Shown piece after piece: positions 31,527 through 64,000 of a stretch of DNA of 64,000 bases. A program made the translations under genes and the position numbers. The notes under the pieces were generated by a model. That model made no database searches. It was not told the origin of the DNA and was given only the letters and a program-made list of their open reading frames with translations. Source of the DNA: Rebecca billardiae RCC1528 (taxonomy: Eukaryota > Protista > Haptophyta); assembly GCA_965240325.2 (NCBI GenBank), contig OZ251242.1, positions 1,240,001 to 1,304,000 of the forward strand. Reading direction: 5' to 3'. Numbering within the stretch: the stretch's first letter is position 1; each line of letters begins with the position of its first letter.

Positions 31527-32465
31527 ATGCCGGTGGCGAGCCTCGTCGGCGCCGCGCTCGGCCGGCGCGCGACCGACGAGGACGGGCCCGCGGACGAGTC
31601 GCCGGCCGCGGTGGGCGAGGGCGCAGATGACGACCCCTCCGCCGACGCCGAGCCCGACCCGCGCGCCGCGCTCGCCAACGTCGCCGAGCGCGCGGGCAAC
31701 ACGCGCTGCGCCGACTGCGGCGCCGCCGATGCGAGCTGGGCGGTGGTGAACTGGGGCATCTTCGTGTGCGTGCGCTGCAGCGGCGCGCACCGGCAGCTGG
31801 GCACGCACGTCTCCCGCGTGCGCTCCACCACGCTCGACGCGTGGAGCCCCGACGAGGTCGAGTTCATGGCGGCGATGGGCAACGCGCGCGCCAACAGCAT
31901 CTGGGAGCAGGACGTGCCGCCCGGCTTCGTCAGGCCGCACGCGGGCGCGGACGCGGCGGAGCGGCTGGCGTGGGTGGAGAGCAAGTACGCGCATCAGCGC
32001 TTCTTCGGCGCCACCGCGCTCGTCGGGCCGAGCGCCGCCGCCTCCGCCGGCGGCGCCGCTTTGGCGGGCGCGGACGCGCCCGCCTCCGCCGCGCCCCAGC
32101 TGAGTCGACGAGCGTCCGCCGCTGCGGCGACGCTCGAGACGGCGGCGAGCGAGGCGCTCTCGCGGCTGGGCTCGACGCTCGGGCTGGGCGCGACGCTCGG
32201 GCTCAGCAGCTCGCCGCGCACGCCGCGCGCCGCCAGCGCACGCGCGTATCTCGACCGGACGGCGCCGGCCGCGCTCGCGGGCGCGGGCGCGCACTCGGCG
32301 CGCGGCGCGGCCGGCGGCGGCGATGGCGGCGGGCCGAGCCAGCCCGTGGCGCTGCTGCTGCTGCTCGGGCACATCTCGGCGTACCCGAGCGCGCTCGAGC
32401 GCGAGTTCTGCGCGCGGCTGCGCAAGAGGGTCGCCAGGGCCGCCGCCGCGAGCGCGCAGCACTCG

Positions 32466-32511
<46 letters not shown>

Positions 32512-33514
32512 GCGGCGGCGGTCTTGGCAGCGGTCTCGGCAGCTCGCTCGGCGGCGGCGGCGGTAGCGGCGGCGGCGGCGCGTTCCCTGCCCCGCTGGTG
32601 ATCAAGACGGTGCACTGGGCGCCGGTCCTGCGCGCGCTCGACGGCCCGGTCGCGGGCGCCGATGGCTCGAGCGCACACGGTGGCGCGAACGGCGCGGGCG
32701 GCGGGAGCGGTGGCGGCGGCGGCGGGGGCGGCGGGAGCGGCGGCGCGCGCCAGCTGCTGGCGGACCGGCTGAGCTTCAGCGGCGTGCGCGGCGGCGGTGC
32801 CGGCGGTGCCTGCGGCGCCGCGGCGCACGGCGGCAGCGGCGGCTTCGAGGGCAAGCTGCGAGAAGTGCTCACCATCTGCGCGCTCGCGCTGTCAGACCTA
32901 GCGGCCGAGGCGGGACCGCGCGCGCCTCTGGTGGTGGTGGGGCACGGGCTGGGCGCGGTGGTGGGGGCGGTGTTCCTGCGGGAGCTGCAGCGGGCGGCGG
33001 CGGAGGCGGCGGCGGAGGCGGGCGAGGAGGCGGCGCCGCAGAGCGCCGACGCGGCGGGCTCGCCCAGGCCGGCGGGCGGCGGTGCCGAGCGCGGCTCGCC
33101 GCGGCCACCCAAGCCGGCGGGCGGCGCGGCCGGCGCCGCGGCCGGCGCCGCGCTCGGCGGCGGCGGCGGCGGCGCGGCGCGCGCGGCGTGCGGCTCGGAG
33201 GGCGCGGTCGGGCTGACGCCGCCGCTGCATCCGCTCCGCCGCGCGCGCTCGCGCCTCGCCGGCGCCAGCCCCCTCGAGCAGGGCGAGACCCTCTGCGCCG
33301 TGTGGACACTGGGCGCGCCGATTGCGCCATGGCTGTGCGCGCGGCTCGCGGCGCGGCCGGCGGGCGGCGCCGCGTCGCGCGACGGCTGGCCGAGCCTCGC
33401 GCGCGCGCCGGTGGCGGCGGGCTCGGCGCCGGCGTCGCCAGCGCCCGTGCCCACCCGCCTCGCCCTCCCGCCCGCCATCGCCAGCGCCGCCGCCCCCCTC
33501 ACATCCTCCGCCCG

Positions 33515-33550
<36 letters not shown>

Positions 33551-34142
33551 CGGCCAGCCGCCGCCGCCGCCGCCGCCGCCTGCGCCGGCTAGCGCGGCGG
33601 CGCCGGCGCTGGCGCCGCCGCTGGCGCCGCAGCTGGGCGTGCGAGTCCCCGCGCCCGCCGCGGCCGCGCACGTGCTCGCGTGCGCGCGCGCGGCGCGCGG
33701 CGGGAAGGGCGCGCCGGCGGAGCCAGCGGCCAACGGCGCCACGCCGCCGCCGCCGCCGCCGCCGCCGCCACGCGTGCCGAGCCGCGCCGCGCAGCTCGCC
33801 GCCGGCGCCGCCGGCCTCGCCAAGGCTGGGGGCGGCGCCGGCACGCCGCGGCCGGCGCGCGCGCCCAAGGGGTACTGGCAGAACGTGTACTGCGCGCGCG
33901 ACCCGTTCGGCGCGCCGATGCGCGGCGCGTTCCGGAACGCGGACGACGCGGCGATGCTAGAGGACACGCCCGTGGGCGCGCACGCCTCCGCGGCCGCGCC
34001 GCCGGGCGCGCTCGGCGCCGCCTCGCTGCACTCCGAGTACTTGGGGCGAGGCTGCACGCGCGAGGTGCTCGAGCCAATGGCGGCGCACCTGGCGCGGCTG
34101 TGGGCGGCGGCGAACGGGGTGCCGCCCGCGGGCGCGAGCTGA
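31527..34142 (+). CDS. ArfGAP fused to a degenerate alpha/beta-hydrolase (DDHD/PA-PLA1-like) region
   Basis: ArfGAP zinc finger NTRCADCGAADASWAVVNWGIFVCVRCSGAHRQLGTHVSRVRSTTLDAW; hydrolase-like IKTVHWAP, VVVGHGLG, WTLGAPI, WQNVYCARDPFG, HSEYL. Confidence 0.8.
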
Positions 34143-35197
34143 GCCGAGGGGCCGGGCGCCGCGGGCGCGCGCGCGGGGGCGCACGCGGCACGGGAGACCT
34201 GAACTGTGAACACCGTCACCGGCCGTTGGTCCCACCTTGACTAATTCTATATACATACACATATATATATATATATGATTTATAATAAATCTTGACACAG
34301 GCACGAGGGCGCGGCTCTCCTGATTCGTCTGTCGAAGTACTGCTGATTGGAGACGGGGGATGTGAGCGGCAGACTCAGAGCGCGGCGCGGCCGCGGGCGC
34401 CGCGGCGGACGCGGTGAGGGAGTCGTCGCCGCGGCCCGGATGCTGATGGTCACCACTCGGAGGCAGTGGGCGGTGCCCAGCAGTATAGGGACGATATATA
34501 TATGGCATTACCGCGGTAGCCTATTTGCAGTCGTCGACGGCCTTGGTCATCATGTCGTATAGTTAGTATCATATATATATATATATAGTTGCACGCGTCG
34601 ACGGTCCGAGCCGAGCCGTGTTCGAGTTGATGCCGTGGTGCCGTTAGTGGATGGGGGCGCTCTGGCCGGTCGGTGCGCGGCCTTCGGGTCTTGCCGAGTT
34701 GCGGAAGTATAGTCGCCGGCCTTGCCGTTGAGGAAATCGTCGCCCTGGCCGTTGAGGAAGTCGTCGCCCTGGCCGCTGAGGGTGCCTGGGCTGCCCAACC
34801 GGGCGCGTCTGGCGCGCCAGCGCCGCGCGCGGCTCTACGCCAGCTGACGGCGGCACGGCGGCAGCCAGATCACAGGGGGGGTCGCCGGGGGGCGCGGCGC
34901 GAGCCTGCTTGGCCGGCTTGGCGTCGCCCCCGCCGGCGGAGGAGGGCCCATCGGCATCCTCCTCCGCCGGCGTGGACGGCTCGGTCGCCCGGCGCGCTTG
35001 CCTGACAGTGACTACTGCTTGAGCGCTTACTTTTTTCAGTCATATCAATGTTATATTTATAAATATATATAGATCGAGTTTTGACGAATAATATAAGATA
35101 TCAGCATATTAATCGACGAATTCGAATAAGCAGCAGGCGCGATATATATATATATTATAATATATATATATTATAATATATCTCGTCGCGTATAGCC

Positions 35198-35230
<33 letters not shown>

Positions 35231-35239
35231 GGCAGAGAG

Positions 35240-35291
<52 letters not shown>
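35198..35291. repeat. (GA)n microsatellite
   Basis: Near-continuous GAGAGA run. Confidence 0.95.
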
Positions 35292-35381
35292 CATTTACGC
35301 CACCTATGTTTTAACGTGTGCATGCACATGCACTGCTACAACTCCGGCGACAGCGACTCGGCTGCCGCGCTGCATCCCGGA

Positions 35382-37090
35382 AGGGCCGTACTGAGGGCAC
35401 TCAACCCCCAGCTAGTGCGGAGGTTGGGGGGCGCGGGTCCGAGGGTCTGTTCGATCTATTCAACTACAAGCAGTAGTCGTCGATGATCGGTTCATGAACC
35501 ACTGATGAAAAACATTTGCTGGGAATAAACTCTGCCCTGGCGGGCGGGGGGGTCGGCGGGCCGTGCCAGTGCTGTCGCAATGTATCCTCTGCGGGTTCGC
35601 GTCTTTCCACATTCGCTTGTGGCCGTGGGTGACGGACAGTCGAGTGCAAGGACCAGCAACGCGAGGCCGCCCACACCCACGAGGGAATGTCAGCACGCGG
35701 GGCGGGACGGGTAGCCCGTTGCTCCGCGCGAGCGCGGGTACGCGCTGTATGTGCCGCATCTCGACCGCGATGGCGTAATCGAGCGCCTCGCCGCCGCCGA
35801 AGCCGCCAGAGTAGATCATGTGCATGTCCTCCTGCCGCCAGCCGAGAGCGGTCGTCGCGAGGATGCTTGCCGATGTCCGCTCCAGGCACGATGGGCTCGG
35901 CGCAGGTCGCGTTGACGTCGTACACGGCCGCCACGCTGAGCACGAGCGCGTTGACGTTCACGCGGTCGTGCGCGCGCGCGCGCGCAGCGACAGCGTGTGC
36001 CACTCGCGATTGAGAGTAGGCAAGCGCTGCTCACGCGGGCACACGAATCGCAGCGCATCAGTCACCGGCGTGACGACTTCCGCCTCGTCCCGCAGCGCCT
36101 GCGCCATGGACGAGGATGACGCGGCGATGTTGCATGCTCGACGATTCATCTCTCTGCGGATGGCATCACGGGCTTGTCTGTGTCGCGCTGCGGCGAGGGT
36201 CGCCAACTCGCGAAGAGGCGGTTGCTGCCACGGCGACAGACCCGGGAGGTGCGTCCGCTGCGCGTCGTACGCCGTTAGCGCTGCGCTTCCGTCGCATTGG
36301 TCACCGTCGACGCCATGCGCCATGCAGGCCGGACGTGGGCTCGGCTGAGGGACCGGACCGCGAGCAATGACTGAGTCCGGTGCGCGGATTCCGGCGATCG
36401 AGTTCAGAAGGCCGCGCCAAATCTTGCGTCGCGTGCGATGGCGCTTCCCGCCCGCGAGACACCTCGTGATGAGGGCCTTTCCGCACCGAGCTCGACGCGC
36501 GACGGTGGATCGCGCGAGGTGGTTGTCGTGCGCAGCGCTTAATACTATGGCTCGTGCGAGCGCTCGACGTGCAAGTCGGGCGAGGACCGCCCCAGGTCGC
36601 ACGATCGTGTCGACGCGCCGAGCGTGCCTCCAAACGCGTCGACTTTGGCCCCCGTTCGACCTGCACGCGAGACGACGAGGGCAGCAAACGCGAATCGGGC
36701 GAAAACCCCCCTCGGGAGTCCTCGCGCGATGTCCGCGCCGGCGTTGGATTTGGCGCGCGCCGCCCACGCGCTCCGCGCCATGGCCGACATGGTTTTCGGC
36801 CGAGCGTCCCCAGTGGGAGCTGCGAGGGCGCCCGGTAGTGAGCGAAGCGACCCGGCAGTGAGCGAGGCGATTTTCTTTTCTTTGCGAGGCGATTTTCTTT
36901 TTTCCTTTTCTTTTTCTTATCTTTTTCCCGGGCACTACAAGGGGCGGACCTACGGCCCGCCATACGGCCTTTGCATTTACCCGCCCATTGGCCGACAAAA
37001 CTGAGACCCCCCCCGGCCCCATTTCCCATCAACCTCCGAGGCCGAGCCTCTCGCATTCAAGGGCGGGTTGAGTGCCCTGCTTACGGCCCT
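35382..37090. mobile_element. Degenerate TIR element (hAT-like) with decayed internal coding remnants
   Basis: AGGGCCGTACTGAGGGCACTCAACCC (35382) versus GGGTTGAGTGCCCTGCTTACGGCCCT (ends 37090); no clear TSD. Confidence 0.5.
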
Positions 37091-37482
37091 GCTCAGTGGC
37101 TGCATGATGCTTGACTGATGCTCGGATGTCATCAGCAGCACGCAGCGCATTATATGCCGCGATCGATCCGGTCCGTACTAGCTCTGATTATTCCGACCGG
37201 GTGGCCGTGGCGTCACTCACTGGCACTCTCGGCGGCGCGGGGTAGTAGCGCAGCCTAGTACTCTCCCACCTGCATTACAGTCCGGCGGCGGACGAATTAT
37301 TCGATCGTATTAGTAGTAGTTACTACGCGGTATTTAGCCGCCTCCGATTTACACGGGTCCGAGTGGCGGGAGTCTGCGGGCGGGCGGGGAGTTCGGGCGG
37401 CCGCACTCGTGGCTCCGTCCGGATCGCAGGGAAACTATGGCGGGTAGCGCACTCCGATGCAGCGCCTCGAATCGACGCGACA

Positions 37483-38334
37483 CTAGGCAGTCTTGCCGTC
37501 GCTCATCGAGCCCCCGGGCGCGGTAAAGCTCGCACCAGGGCGCGTGTACGTCGCCGGCAGATGCATAAACTTGCTGTACACGCGGATGTCGACAGCAACC
37601 GGTCCACGAAAGTAGTAGCACTCTGGTGCCGCAATCTGGTCAATGTCCTTCTTGTACTTGTGCGCGGTGCCCTTGGAGAGGTGGAAGCGGAGCTCGTTCG
37701 TGTCCGTGAACACCTCGTGAATGATCAGTGCGTCCTCGCCCACCACCTGGTACACCTCGAACCGGACCAAGCCCTTCTCCATTGAGTGGGCGTCAGTGCC
37801 GACGCGCTGCCACCAGTACCGCAGCTCTGGAAGGTTGCTCGTGCTGCCGGGCTTGCAGGTCCACTTGGCAGTCACGTTGATCGCCGTTGCCGGATCAGGG
37901 CGACGGTAGTCCTCCTTTACGTACCCGTACAAGAACGTACCAAAGCTTACGGACGGGATCTTAGCAGCGAGGGCAGAGCGCACGCTGGCAGCGATATCGA
38001 TGCCGCGCACGAGGTGCAGCTCGGGCCGAGCGTGCTCGAGCGCGGGGGGCAAGGCGGTGCTCACGTACGCCTCAAGAGCCTTGGCATCCTTGAAGACCTG
38101 GTGCACCAGCGACGCGTCCTGCCCATTCGCAGGGACCACAGAGCCCGAGAGCGCTCCCGTCCCGCCCGGTGTGGGAAGCCCTTTGACCAGGGCGGAGGAG
38201 ACTCCCGGGCCGAAGAAGCTCGCCGAGAAGCCGCCGGGCTTCGTCGGCGCCCACTTGCCCGTCAGTGTGATCTCACCTCCCAGCCGCGAGGGCGCGGCGA
38301 GAAAGTCGGGGAGCGGCGTGTCGAACTGACCCAT
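37483..38334 (-). CDS. Intronless tandem ABM/Dabb-like (dimeric alpha-beta barrel) protein
   Basis: Internal duplication: ITLTGKWAPTKPG...DASLVHQVFKDAKALEAY and INVTAKWTCKPG...EKGLVRFEVY...DALIIHEVFTDTNELRFH; normal amino-acid composition. Confidence 0.7.
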   Translation of the reverse strand: MGQFDTPLPDFLAAPSRLGGEITLTGKWAPTKPGGFSASFFGPGVSSALVKGLPTPGGTGALSGSVVPANGQDASLVHQVFKDAKALEAYVSTALPPALEHARPELHLVRGIDIAASVRSALAAKIPSVSFGTFLYGYVKEDYRRPDPATAINVTAKWTCKPGSTSNLPELRYWWQRVGTDAHSMEKGLVRFEVYQVVGEDALIIHEVFTDTNELRFHLSKGTAHKYKKDIDQIAAPECYYFRGPVAVDIRVYSKFMHLPATYTRPGASFTAPGGSMSDGKTA

Positions 38335-38714
38335 GCCGGCGGCGTCGGCTCCCGCGCTCCACCGACCAAACTTGGTGTTCCCGCGCGCTCCGACCGACCA
38401 AACTTGGTACTACTACCTGTAGTTTTACTACCTTACCGTAGTAGTACTAGATACGTAACTGTAAAGTGTACCTACCAATTCTATGATTCAAACCGTAAAA
38501 TGAGGGGGGATATCGCTTGGCCGGAAGGTGGCACGGTCGCTCGGAAGTCGAAACAGCCTCGGCGTCGGCGCGTCGCGTTCGCTCGAGGCTTGGAGGCCAG
38601 CGCGAGCTGGCGGGGGCTCGAGCGCGCCAGAAAATCGACGTCGCGGAGATGAAATGGCTGGGTCTCAATCAGCCAGCGCGCCGCCGTCGATCGAGAGTTG
38701 CAGCCCTCTGCGGC

Positions 38715-39069
38715 TGCAACTCTCGACGGCGGCGCGCCAATCCCGGTATGAGTCATTGCTTGACTGGATCTGCGCCCCGGGCGTCGCCTGCCACTGTTTA
38801 CGGCCGTCCACCAGCCCTACAGTCCGAGGCTCAGTAGGCGCGCGCGCTTGATGCGTGCCGTGCCCTGCGCGGTTGTCACCTGGCTGCCTGCCCCTGCTGC
38901 TGCAAATCTCGACGGCGGCACGCCGCAATCCATATTGCTTGCTTGACTGGATCTGCGCACCGGACGTGGCCTGCCACTGCCTTTACGTCCGTCCACCGGT
39001 CCTACAGTCCGAGGCCCAGCAGGCGCGCGCGCTTGCTGCGTGCCCTGCGCAGTTGTCACAGCAGGCTGC
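38715..39069. repeat. Two diverged direct repeats with ~185-bp period
   Basis: TGCAA.TCTCGACGGCGGC...TTGACTGGATCTGCGC...CTACAGTCCGAGGC...GTTGTCAC at ~38715 and ~38901. Confidence 0.75.
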
Positions 39070-58923: not shown

Positions 58924-61900
58924 TCACAGATACAGCCCGCCCTTCTTGCCGCTCTGCTCCCACGCCTCGCGCACCGCCTTCCTGCCCGCCTCGCTGAGGC
59001 TGAAGTCATTAAGACTGCGGGAGGCGCGCAGTCGGGGACGGGTGTCGGGCGCGCGGCGGGAGCGTGAGCAAGGGCAGAGCGCGCGCGTGCGATGCCTGCC
59101 CGCCCGAGCACGCGCGAGCGCGCCGCCTGCGCCGCTGCCACAGCGCCCCGCGGCCGCGCCGCCCGCCCGCCGCCGCGCGCGCGCCCGAGCCCGCCGACGG
59201 GCCGCGCGCGCGGCGCACGCTCGGACATCACCGCGCGAGGGCGCGCGGCGCGCGCGCGCGCGGCGCGCCGCGCTCGACGTGCGTCCGCAGCACATGCCCC
59301 AGCTGGCACCCGCTCACCCACCCCCGCCCCTCCACGCCACCCGCGCGCCCGCACCCGCGCGCGTGCACACGTACCTGAGGTCAAGCGTCTGCAGGGAGCG
59401 GCTGTGACGCACGGCGTCCGCGATGGCGGTGGCGCCAGCGTCGCTGATCCGGTTGAAGCTGCGGGAGGCGCGGCGGGAGGGGCGGGCGCGCGGCGGGGTT
59501 GTGAGTGGGTGTCGAGCGCGCACGTGCGATGCGTGCCCGCCCGTGCACGCGCGAGCGCGCCGCACGCGCCGCTGCCACAGCGCCCCGCGGCCGCGCCGCC
59601 CGCCCGCCGCCGCGCGCGCGCCCGAGCCCGCCGACGGGCCGCGCGCGCGGCGCACGCTCGGACATCACCGCGCGAGGGCGCGCGGCGCGCGCGCGCGCGG
59701 CGCGCCGCGCTCGACGTGCGTCCGCAGGGCATGCCCCGGCTGGCGCCCGCCCACCCATCCCCGCCCCTCCGCGCCACCCCCGCGCCCGCCCCCGCGCGCG
59801 TGCACACGTACCTGAGGTAGAGCTTCTGCAGGGAGCGGCTGTGGCGCACTGCTTCCGCGATGGCGGTGGCGCCAGCGGTGCCGATCTCGTTGCCACTGCG
59901 GGAGGCGCGGCGGGAGGGGCGGGCGCGCGGCGGGGGCGTGAGTGGGTGTCGAGCGCGCGCGCGCGCAGCGTGCCCGCCCGAGCACGCGCGAGCGCGCCGC
60001 ACGCGCCGCTGCCACAGCGCCCCGCGGCCGCGCCGCCCGCCCGCCGCCGCGTGCGCGCCCGAGCCCGCCGACGGGCCGCGCGCGCGGCGCACGCTCGGAC
60101 ATCACCGCGCGAGGGCGCGCGGCGCGCGCGCGCGCGGCGCGCCGCGCTCGACGTGCGTCCGCAGCGCATGCCCCGGCTGGCGCCCACCCACCCACCCCCG
60201 CCCCTCCGCGCCACCCCCGCCCCCGCACCCGCGCGCGTGCACACGTACTGGAGGTTGAGCTCCTGCAGGGAGCGGCTGTGGCGCACGGCGTCCGCGATGG
60301 CAGTGGCGCCAGCGGCGCCGATCTCGTTGGCACTGCGGGAGGCGCGGCGGGAGGGGCGGGCGCGCGGCGCGGGCGTGAGTGGGTGTCGAGCGCGCGCGCG
60401 CGCAGCGTGCCCGCCCGAGCACGCGCGAGCGCGCCGCACGCGCCACTGCCACAGCGCCCCGCGGCCGCGCCGCCCGCCCGCCGCCGCGTGCGCGCCCGAG
60501 CCCGCCGACGGGCCGCGCGCGCGGCGCACGCTCGGACATCACCGCGCGAGGGCGCGCGGCGCGCGCGCGCGCGGCGCGCCGCGCTCGACGTGCGTCCGCA
60601 GCGCATGCCCCGGCTGGCACCCGCTCACCCACCCCCGCCCCTCCACGCCACCCCCGCGCCCGCCCCCGCGCGTGCACACGTACTAGAGGTCAAGCGACTG
60701 CAGGGAGCGGCTGTGACGCACGGCGTCCGCGATGGCGGTGGCGCCAGCGGCGCCGATCCCGTTGGCACTGCGGGAGGCGCGGCGGGAGGGGCGGGCGCGC
60801 GGCTGGGGTGTGAGTGGGTGTCGAGCGCGCGCGCGCGATGCGTGCCCGCCCGAGCACGCGCGAGCGCGCCGCACGCGCCGCTGCCACAGCGCTCCACGGC
60901 CGCGCCGCCCGCCCGCCGCCGCGCGCGCGCCCGAGCCCGCCGACGGGCCGCGCGCGCGGCGCACGCTCGGACATCACCGCGCGAGGGCGCGCGGCGCGCG
61001 CGCGCGCGGCGCGCCGCGCTCGACGTGCGTCCGCAGCAAATGCCCCGGCTGGCGCCCGCTCACCCACCCCCGCCCCTCCGCGCCACCCCCGCGCCCGCCC
61101 CCGCGCGCGTGCACACGTACTGGAGGCCAAGCGTCTGCAGGGAGCGGCTGTGGCGCACGGCGTCCGCGATGGCGGTGGCGCCAGCGGCGCCGATCTTGTT
61201 CCAACTGTGGAAGGCGCGGCGGGAGGGGCGGGCGCGCGGCGGGGGCGTGAGTGGGTGTCGGGCGCGCGCGTGCGATGCGTGCCCACCCGAGCATGCGCGA
61301 GCGCGCCGCACGCGCCGCTGCCACAGCGCCCCGCGGCCGCGCCGCCCGCCCGCCGCCGCGCGCGCGCCCGAGCCCGCCGACGCGGCCGTGCGCGCGGCGC
61401 ACGCTCGGACATCACCGCGCGAGGGCGCGCGGCGCGCGCGCGCGCGGCGCGCCGCGCTCGACGTGCGTCCACAGCGCATACCCCGGCTGGCGCCCACCCA
61501 CCCACCCCCGCCCCTCCGCGCCACCCCCGCGCCCGCCCCCGCGCGCGTGCACACGTACCCGAGCTCAAGCGTCTGCAGGGAGCGGCTGTGGCGCACTGCT
61601 TCCGCGATGGCGGTGGCGCCAGCGGCGCCGATCTTGTTCCAACTGTGGAAGGCGCGGCGGGAGGGGCGGGCGCGCGGCGGGGGCGTGGGTGGGTGTCGGG
61701 CGCGCGCGTGCGATGCGTGCCCGCCCGAGCATGCGCGAGCGCGCCGCACGCGCCGCTGCCACAGCGCCCCGCGGCCGCGCCGCCCGCCCGCCGCCGCGCG
61801 CGCGCCCGAGCCCGCCGACGCGGCCGCGCGCGCGGCGCACGCTCGGACATCACCGCGCGAGGGCGCGCGGCGCGCGCGCGCGCGGCGCGCCGCGCTCGAC

Positions 61901-64000
61901 GTGCGTCCGCAGCGCATACCCCGGCTGGCACCCGCTCACCCACCCCCGCCCCTCCGCACCACCCCCGCCCCCGCACCCGCGCGCGTGCACACGTACCTGA
62001 GGTCAAGCGTCTGCAGGGAGCGGCTGTGGCGCACGGCGTCCGCGATGGCAGTGGCGCCAGCGGCGCCGATCTCGTTGGCACTGCGGGAGGCGCGGCGGGA
62101 GGGGCGGGCGCGCGGCTGGGGTGTGAGTGGGTGTCGAGCGCGCGCGCGCGATGCGTGCCCGCCCGAGCATGCGCGAGCGCGCCGCACGCGCCGCTGCCAC
62201 AGCGCTCCACGGCCGCGCCGCCCGCCCGCCGCCGCGTGCGCGCCCGAGCCCGCCGACGGGCCGCGCGCGCGGCGCACGCTCGGACATCACCGCGCGAGGG
62301 CGCGCGGCGCGCGCGCGCGCGGCGCGCCGCGCTCGACGTGCGTCCGCAGCGCATGCCCCGGCTGGCGCCCACCCACCCACCCCCGCCCCTCCGCGCCACC
62401 CCCGCCCCCGCACCCGCGCGCGTGCACACGTACTGGAGGTTGAGCTCCTGCAGGGAGCGGCTGTGGCGCACGGCGTCCGCGATGGCAGTGGCGCCAGCGG
62501 CGCCGATCTCGTTGCCACTGCGGGAGGCGCGGCGGGAGGGGCGGGCGCGCGGCGCGGGCGTGAGTGGGTGCCGAGCGCGCGCGCGCGCAGCGTGCCCGCC
62601 CGAGCACGCGCGAGCGCGCCGCACGCGCCACTGCCACAGCGCCCCGCGGCCGCGCCGCCCGCCCGCCGCCGCGCGCGCGCCCGAGCCCGCCGACGGGCCG
62701 CGCGCGCGGCGCACGCTCGGACATCACCGCGCGAGGGCGCGCGGCGCGCGCGCGCGCGGCGCGCCGCGCTCGACGTGCGTCCGCAGGGCATGCCCCAGCT
62801 GGCACCCGCTCACCCACCCCCGCCCCTCCGCGCCACCCGCGCGCCCGCCCCCGCGCGCGTGCACACGTACCCGAGGTTGAGCTTCTGCAGGGAGCGGCTG
62901 TGGCGCACTGCTTCCGCGATGGCGGTGGCGCCAGCGTCGCCGATCTTGTTCCAACTGTGGAAGGCGCGGCGGGAGGGGCGGGCGCGCGGCGGGGGCGTGA
63001 GTGGGTGTCGAGCGCGCGCGCGCGATGCGTGCCCGCCCGTGCACGCGCGAGCGCGCCGCACGCGCCGCTGCCACAGCGCCCCGCGGCCGCGCCGCCCGCC
63101 CGCCGCCGCGCGCGCGCCCGAGCCCGCCGACGCGGCCGCGCGCGCGGCGCACGCTCGGACATCACCGCGCGAGGGCGCGCGGCGCGCGCGCGCGCGGCGC
63201 GCCGCGCTCGACGTGCGTCCGCAGCGCATGCCCCGGCTGGCGCCCACCCACCCACCCCCGCCCCTCCGCGCCACCCCCGCCCCCGCACCCGCGCGCGTGC
63301 ACACGTACTGGAGGTTGAGCTCCTGCAGGGAGCGGCTGTGGCGCACGGCGTCCGCGATGGCAGTGGCGCCAGCGTCGCCGATCTCGTTGCCACTGCGGGA
63401 GGCGCGGCGGGAGGGGCGGGCGCGCGGCGCGGGCGTGAGTGGGTGCCGAGCGCGCGCGCGCGCAGCGTGCCCGCCCGAGCACGCGCGAGCGCGCCGCACG
63501 CGCCGCTGCCACAGCGCCCCGCGGCCGCGCCGCCCGCCCGCCGCAGCGCGCGCGCCCGAGCCCGCCGCAGCAGCCGCAGCGGCGTCGCCACGCGCGCGCG
63601 CGCACACCCGAGGTCGAAGACCACCGGGTCTGGGTTGGCCTTGAGCTGCAGCAGGCGCACGACGACGGCCTTGTGCGCTACCCACGCGCAGCCCCACGCC
63701 CACGCGAGTGCCGCCAGCGCAGGCGCGCTCTGCGCCTCGCGCCACGCGGACGGCCAGCGCAGCGCGGCCACCGCCAGCGCGGCCTCCGCGCAGCCGAGCA
63801 GGATGTGGGTGGGCGCCGTGCGCGCGAGCCACCCCGCCGAGCTCAGGTCGACCATGCCGACGGCGGCGTACACGATGCCCGCCTCCCACGCCGCGCTCCG
63901 CCAGGCCGCCAGCTGCCCTCCGCGCTCGAGTGCACCCATGACCTTGAGGTGGCCGCTGTAGCGCACGGAGGCGACCAGCGCGAGCGCCGCCGCAGCGAGC
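58924..64000 (-). CDS. Membrane-anchored RI/NLRC3-type LRR protein, 5' end outside the window. Exons: >64000-63608; ten 84-bp LRR exons (63309-63392, 62871-62954, 62434-62517, 61997-62080, 61559-61642, 61121-61204, 60684-60767, 60249-60332, 59812-59895, 59375-59458); terminal cap exon 59014-58924
   Basis: Each exon is flanked by ..(g/a)cag| and |gtacgt and encodes xNxIG[AD]AGATAIA[DE]AVRHSRSLQxLxL; the spliced ORF is open to TGA at 58924; the upstream exon has several hydrophobic helices and ends in VVFDL. Confidence 0.9.
59015..63565. repeat. Tandem array of ~437-bp intron+exon units (about 10.4 copies)
   Basis: Near-identical introns of 351-360 bp alternate with 84-bp exons. Confidence 0.95.

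Follow-up and report, generated by a model that had tools for sequence, protein, structure and literature searches.

That gene conversion or unequal crossover, coupled with diversifying selection, acts on repeats is already established in fungi, plants, ciliates and brown algae, and it is with such systems, and with the human NOD/NLRC receptors, that we compare an exon array from the haptophyte alga Rebecca billardiae RCC1528. The array lies in a 64,000-nt stretch of contig OZ251242.1 (hereafter the window, to which all coordinates refer) and is the C-terminal leucine-rich repeat (LRR) domain of a gene on the minus strand. Each of its ten units comprises one 84-nt exon, encoding one 28-aa ribonuclease inhibitor (RI)-type LRR, and one phase-2 GT..AG intron of 351 to 354 nt. 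Very probably, the units arose by tandem duplication and were then reshaped by repeated homologous exchange among themselves, together with diversifying selection on the binding face of the domain.

The exon layout is most familiar from vertebrates. Most human NOD/NLRC genes carry one 28-aa RI-type LRR per exon, with the exon border at a fixed position in the beta-strand, and these exons are symmetric, such that the reading frame survives the skipping of one (Hoss et al. 2019, PMC6642158). The ten 84-nt exons described here, with their border likewise at a fixed strand position, resemble that layout, but they are recent tandem copies that share 94% identity with their introns included, and their host is an alga. 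Moreover, no NACHT domain was seen in the part of the gene that lies inside the window, where the 130 residues upstream of the array have no Pfam match and the 5′ part of the gene extends beyond base 64000; and those parts of Hoss et al. (PMC6642158) that a search by term brings up do not mention exchange between repeats at the sub-exon level. In the ciliate Tetrahymena, arrays of about ten 90-bp LRR exons have phase-2 introns and a junction residue, and unequal crossing over has been proposed for them (Xiong et al. 2019, PMC6564038). The array of LRR exons, the intron phase and the junction residue are all found again here; the repeat, however, is of 30 aa in Tetrahymena and of the 28-aa RI type in Rebecca, the association with LINE-like elements reported for the ciliate is not seen here, and mosaic units were not tested for in that study (PMC6564038).

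The brown-algal LRR-ROCO genes likewise have one phase-2 LRR exon per repeat, of 72 nt (24 aa), with the whole LxxLxLxxNxL motif inside the exon (Zambounis et al. 2012, PMC3341825; Teng et al. 2024, PMC11378527). Their LRR domain is a recombination hot spot, residues of its concave face are under positive selection, alternative splicing occurs, and the introns contain inactivated or reverse-strand LRR exons (PMC3341825, PMC11378527). The two systems are alike in having one LRR per phase-2 exon, a recombining LRR domain and selection on face residues, and they differ in that the intron here cuts the motif and in that the window has no reverse-strand or extra intronic exon copies. A further parallel, in a different fold, is offered by the fungal het-d/het-e WD repeats, which are near-identical tandem repeats in concerted evolution under constant exchange, with positive selection on a few surface residues per repeat, and by fungal NLR repeats generally, for which both inter-locus exchange and repeat-number polymorphism have been documented (Paoletti et al. 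2007, PMC1805685; Dyrka et al. 2014, PMC4986451). High identity between repeats (94% over 10.4 units), hypervariable face codons and exchange between repeats are common to the fungal genes and to the array, but the fungal repeats are WD, ANK or TPR rather than LRR and lack introns. In any case, the mode by which this array evolves is already known, and its sub-exon mosaic structure is a useful detail rather than a new principle or mechanism. What the array offers is a clean, statistically tested case of repeat-receptor diversification, in which the exchange of cassettes re-pairs half-strands and selection diversifies five residues in each repeat. It does so in a group whose immunity and cell-recognition biology have, to our knowledge, been little studied.

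RI-type LRRs (Pfam LRR_6, PF13516) are repeats of 28 to 29 aa with the pattern LxxLxLxxNxIgdxGaxxLaxaL, and all ten exons follow this pattern, their 28-residue consensus being xNxIGxAGATAIAxAVRHSRSLQxLxL. Submitted alone, each exon aligns its residues 1-13 with LRR_6, at scores of 13-21 bits against a gathering threshold of 23.4, each exon covering model positions 12-24 only. Single exons also match repeats in the solved structures of NOD2 (5irm), ribonuclease inhibitor (1a4y, 1z7x, 4per), RanGAP1, NLRP9 and NLRX1, with E-values in the structure database down to 3e-8. Together, the Pfam and structure matches identify the repeat as RI-type and place the intron between the LxL and the xN of the strand motif LxxLxLxxN. 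All ten exons are bordered by ..CAG and GTACGTGTGCAC, the exon boundary falling after the former and before the latter, and the nine introns from E1 to E10 measure, in order, 354, 353, 353, 354, 354, 353, 351, 353 and 353 nt. All of them being in phase 2, the junction codon takes its first two bases from the end of one exon and its third from the start of the following exon, and since this codon belongs to the face of the strand, each ligand-facing strand is encoded by two neighbouring exons. The internal exon junctions differ in every case (9/9).

The ligand-facing location of these strand positions is an established feature of LRR structure. As face positions we took the x positions of the strand, namely residues 25 and 27, the junction codon, and residues 2 and 4, with residues 1, 2, 4, 25 and 27 counted as the five. 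Variation in the exons is concentrated there: 13 of the 15 face-codon columns are variable, compared with 8 of the 69 columns in the rest of the exon (p=3e-8), where variation is as dense as in the intron (intron diversity, 0.036-0.046). The nonsynonymous distance (pN) is 0.457 at residues 2, 4, 25 and 27 and 0.027 elsewhere in the exon, with a synonymous distance (pS) of 0.10. This codon pattern indicates that, in LxxLxLxxN, the five solvent-exposed positions are under diversifying selection and that purifying selection holds the scaffold residues constant. The face is predicted to bind ligands.

The second property of the array is that its units are mosaics. For this comparison the ten units, numbered as their exons, were aligned after re-phasing to run from intron core through exon to the next intron core (438 columns). 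Of these columns 61 vary, made up of 21 of the 84 exon columns and 40 of the 354 intron columns, and 44 are parsimony-informative. Three multi-substitution blocks can be followed through the alignment. The WNK block, of six linked changes that begin 180 nt upstream of the exon and end at codon 4, is carried by units 2, 5 and 6; the GAAGCA block at codons 15-16, which combines a D>E replacement with a synonymous change, by units 2, 5 and 9; and the ACG-CTT-G block at codons 25-27, which includes the synonymous change CTC>CTT, by units 4-7 and 10. All four combinations are present for each of the three block pairs, which requires at least two exchanges inside the 84-nt exon, and the synonymous passengers in the blocks argue against convergent selection as their source. 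When the units were painted with a copying model, unit 9 resembled unit 8 as far as column 202 and unit 2 from column 215 onwards, and unit 4 resembled unit 7 as far as column 187, then unit 3 as far as column 236, and unit 10 at the 3′ end; the 5′ half of exon E4 is identical to that of E8. End points of exchange fall in the conserved exon core (aligned columns 202-255) of units 4, 6, 7, 9 and 10, and in introns as well. Ten of the 23 painted switches lie in the exon, which holds 34% of the markers, an enrichment that is not significant. Units 1, 3 and 8 are near-identical as wholes, with 3 differences in 438 columns, and although they are not adjacent they share identical tracts of 241 to 305 nt. 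Duplication of higher-order blocks of several units was considered separately and rejected, as the longest identical run at any unit offset is 305 nt.

These results bear directly on the original prediction, which had proposed that the intron splits the variable strand and that the halves on either side are reassorted. As it had noted, exons E1, E3 and E8 all end in ..QELNL followed by ‘CA’ and are succeeded by exons beginning WNK (E2), ANE (E4) and GNE (E9), and the WNK exons E2, E5 and E6 end in KLNL, TLEL and TLGL, respectively. The first of these patterns is present but was over-read, since for the most part it reflects whole units 1, 3 and 8 standing beside different neighbours, and not a break within each intron. 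A similar adjustment is needed for the haplotype said to be private to the introns that precede the WNK exons. These introns (62955-63308, 61643-61996 and 61205-61558) are indeed the only ones of 354 nt and the sole carriers of the extra G (plus strand CCGACGCGGCC) and of the acceptor TTCCACAG, but the haplotype is not uniform between these markers: of 175 positions, 5 set the intron before E2 apart from the other two, and 2 separate those before E5 and E6 from each other. That exchange, by unequal crossover or gene conversion, took place both in the exon core and in the introns was borne out by switch ends in both and by significant recombination tests in both. The description of this process as combinatorial is apt for its evolutionary outcome, without any indication of a dedicated or somatic mechanism.

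A rival explanation is a history of serial unit duplication and point mutation, in which units came to share states by recurrent CpG mutation and by convergent selection on face codons. It has some grounds, since 16 of the 44 informative sites are of the CpG-transition type and the face codons are clearly selected. On a single tree, however, the data fit poorly. An exhaustive parsimony search of all 2,027,025 unrooted trees gave a best length of 85 steps against a minimum of 50 (consistency index, 0.59), that is, an excess of 35 steps for the 44 sites. Of the pairs of informative sites, 40% are mutually incompatible, and the Hudson-Kaplan minimum (Rmin) is 15 events. Incompatibility persists at 38% without CpG-type transitions, at 44% when only transversions, indels and multistate sites are kept, and at 35% for intron sites alone. 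Compatibility is, moreover, spatially clustered. In a test of the pairwise homoplasy index (PHI) type, which compares the compatibility of neighbouring informative sites with that in permuted orders of the same sites, all sites together gave p=0.0002 with three neighbours and p=0.009 with five; the value was 0.0016 once adjacent identical patterns were collapsed, 0.007 for introns alone and 0.002 for exons alone. Recurrent mutation did not produce such clustering. Of 200 null data sets simulated along the best tree, with recurrent mutation set site by site to match the observed homoplasy and with positions kept, 1% returned p<=0.01 and 4.5% returned p<=0.05, a nominal false-positive rate, and thus clustered fast sites do not explain the signal. 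Nor do the parts of the unit agree on one tree. Such agreement is what the original prediction had named as fatal to its inference, and the inference therefore stands. With the unit cut into four contiguous partitions (the 3′ part of the intron, the two halves of the exon and the 5′ part of the intron), the incongruence length difference (ILD) was 13, whereas in 200 random partitions of matching size it averaged 7.6 and was never above 12; for a left/right split at mid-exon the ILD p value was 0.035. The maximum likelihood (ML) trees of the two halves differ: the left tree places unit 9 with 8, 3 and 1, the right tree places it with 2, and units 5 and 6 are sisters on the left tree only. In approximately unbiased (AU) tests each half rejects the ML tree of the other, at p=4e-6 for the left data and p=0.033 for the right data. 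The Sawyer sum-of-squares fragment statistic (SSCF) gave p=0.036. Together with the four gametes shown by blocks that contain synonymous changes, these results largely refute serial duplication with point mutation alone, and we regard it as very unlikely.

What fits the data is a history in which the LRR domain would have grown by tandem duplication of a 437-bp unit (84-nt exon plus a phase-2 intron of ~353 nt), after which the ten units would have traded sequence by homologous recombination, mostly as non-reciprocal patches of gene conversion, with unequal crossover also possible. With tract ends in both introns and exon, most units would have become mosaics of other units, and, the strands being split over two exons, exchange or re-ordering of units would bring about new strand combinations. 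Gene conversion fits best because identical patches occur at non-adjacent units amid diverged flanks, and the synonymous divergence of ~0.10 between units suggests that exchange has proceeded on an evolutionary, and probably germline, time scale rather than a somatic one. Several points nevertheless weigh against this history or against parts of it. The PHI-type test was not significant in the small non-CpG and transversion-only subsets, the former of which also counts in favor of recurrent mutation, and the Sawyer maximal-fragment statistic was not significant either. Unequal crossover is likewise possible as a source of hybrid units, and one haplotype cannot separate it from gene conversion. 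Splicing and expression are predictions based only on GT..AG sites, reading frame and LRR motif. Finally, where 437-bp repeats are 94% identical, polishing errors could introduce some mosaic patterns or remove others. In its strongest form this last point becomes an explanation of its own, namely that the array is real but its mosaics are false, short-read assembly or polishing having scrambled the phase of the variants that distinguish the near-identical 437-bp units. Units 94% identical over 4.5 kb are just the kind of repeat prone to polishing errors. Such scrambling seems unlikely, however, given that frame, splice sites and LRR scaffold are intact in all ten exons, that the variation is codon-structured and focused on face codons, and that the lengths of the repeated introns vary by just 1-3 nt and at fixed places, although none of these amounts to proof of correct phasing. 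At the other extreme stands programmed or somatic diversification, of the type of lamprey variable lymphocyte receptor (VLR) assembly or of the somatic exon shuffling suggested for Ectocarpus ROCO genes, with frequent reshuffling in single cells that might be guided by the intron core. In VLR-like assembly, an incomplete germline gene is completed from flanking silent cassettes. In favor of such a system, the Rebecca array has interchangeable same-phase cassettes, hypervariable face residues and, within each intron, an 81-nt (CG)n-rich core whose invariance is unexpected, and somatic shuffling has been raised as an idea for brown algae by Zambounis et al. (PMC3341825). Against it, the germline gene is complete and in frame across the array, with an unbroken exon series followed by a terminal exon and a stop codon, so assembly is not required; a search for the exon core with up to 3 mismatches found no extra, reverse-strand or silent donor cassettes in the window; the synonymous divergence between units points to slow exchange; and no alternative junction appears in the read data. 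We consider such a system extremely unlikely, and nothing indicates a programmed diversity machine. Homologous exchange over evolutionary time, following tandem duplication, thus remains the reading that we prefer, and the features to which it refers are collected in Table 1.

Table 1. Features of the LRR exon array and its surroundings, in window coordinates
Feature	Position	Strand	Description	Basis
Tandem array	59014-63567	minus	437-bp exon + intron unit, 10.4 copies, 94% matches	TRF and alignments
Upstream exon	63608-64000	minus	reaches past the window end; hydrophobic, Ala/Trp-rich, 130 aa ending ..VVFDL + ‘GG’ of junction codon	translation
Intron I0	63393-63607	minus	215 nt; homology to repeated intron limited to 3′ ~175 nt	intron alignment
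Exon E1	63309-63392	minus	GNEIGDAGATAIADAVRHSRSLQELNL	translation, profile match
Exon E2	62871-62954	minus	WNK...AEAV...KLNL	translation, profile and structure matches
Exon E3	62434-62517	minus	GNE...ELNL	translation
Exon E4	61997-62080	minus	ANE...TLDL; mosaic	translation, unit comparison, painting
Exon E5	61559-61642	minus	WNK...AEAV...TLEL; all three haplotype blocks together	translation, alignment, painting
Exon E6	61121-61204	minus	WNK...ADAV...TLGL	translation, alignment, painting
Exon E7	60684-60767	minus	ANG...SLDL	translation, profile match
Exon E8	60249-60332	minus	ANE...ELNL	translation
Exon E9	59812-59895	minus	GNE..T..AEAV...KLYL; mosaic	translation, painting, half trees
Exon E10	59375-59458	minus	FNRISD...TLDL; most divergent unit, at array edge	translation, painting
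Intron I10	59015-59374	minus	360 nt; homologous to repeated intron, final ~50 nt diverged	alignment
Terminal exon	58924-59014	minus	degenerate last repeat LNDFSLSEAGRKAV..., stop TGA	translation
305-nt tract	62210-62514	minus	identical to 60025-60329; exon codon 2 of E3/E8 to middle of next intron	identity comparison
241-nt tract	63134-63374	minus	identical to 62259-62499 and 60074-60314 (units 1, 3, 8)	identity comparison
Intron core	61390-61470	minus	81 nt, invariant, (CG)n-rich; one of ten identical copies	10/10 copies, 0 mismatches
Other nine core copies	59206-59286, 59643-59723, 60080-60160, 60517-60597, 60952-61032, 61828-61908, 62265-62345, 62702-62782, 63140-63220	minus		0 mismatches

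The invariance of the intron core is itself unexpected: the probability of a longest invariant run of at least 81 nt is 0.0013, and the intron sequence flanking the core varies by about 5-7%. Either preferential homogenisation, with the core as a hot spot, or constraint could account for it. A bolder proposal, that the core is a cis-acting recombination hot spot which keeps the cassettes exchangeable, and that the array is a dedicated and possibly mitotically active generator of receptor surfaces, strikes us as highly improbable. As to RNA structure, a representative intron (61205-61558) is predicted to fold with its G-rich 5′ arm paired to its C-rich 3′ arm, forming one long hairpin that joins the splice sites (minimum free energy, -265 kcal/mol; z=-2.0). 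None of the 133 predicted pairs shows compensatory changes among the nine introns (0/133), and hence there is no evidence for a selected intron RNA structure. An Rfam search of the array gave no match.

By alignment, the repeat begins within intron I0 and stops within intron I10. The exon core, sought with up to 3 mismatches, has 10 matches in the window, all on the minus strand. In a metagenome scan with the same core, the sole match was of 23 nt, at 163-185 of a bacterial-looking contig (L001), and we attribute it to chance and consider it unrelated to the array. The 130 residues of the upstream exon yielded no Atlas lead. The listing of open reading frames (ORFs) is uninformative at the 80% G+C found here, as long ORFs occur in every frame.

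Public sequence runs contribute little at this locus. In four runs, the contigs that fall here are only low-complexity pieces of 31-44 nt and one contig of 151 nt, and the best run carries 26% of the words searched for. The 151-nt contig, from run X1 (organism A), matches 63743-63893 with 3 differences (98%), from which we infer that a close strain or relative is present in the public data, with coverage of the locus almost nil.

Elsewhere in the window, the overall G+C content of which is 72.8%, there is a sharp step in composition, from 84% (32000-34000) to about 62-63% (34000-38000). The lower-GC part holds (AT)n and (AG)47 microsatellites at 35142-35291. A separate tandem duplication of 183-185 bp, with 1.9 copies and 82-84% matches, lies at 38703-39059, also in a lower-GC part of the window.

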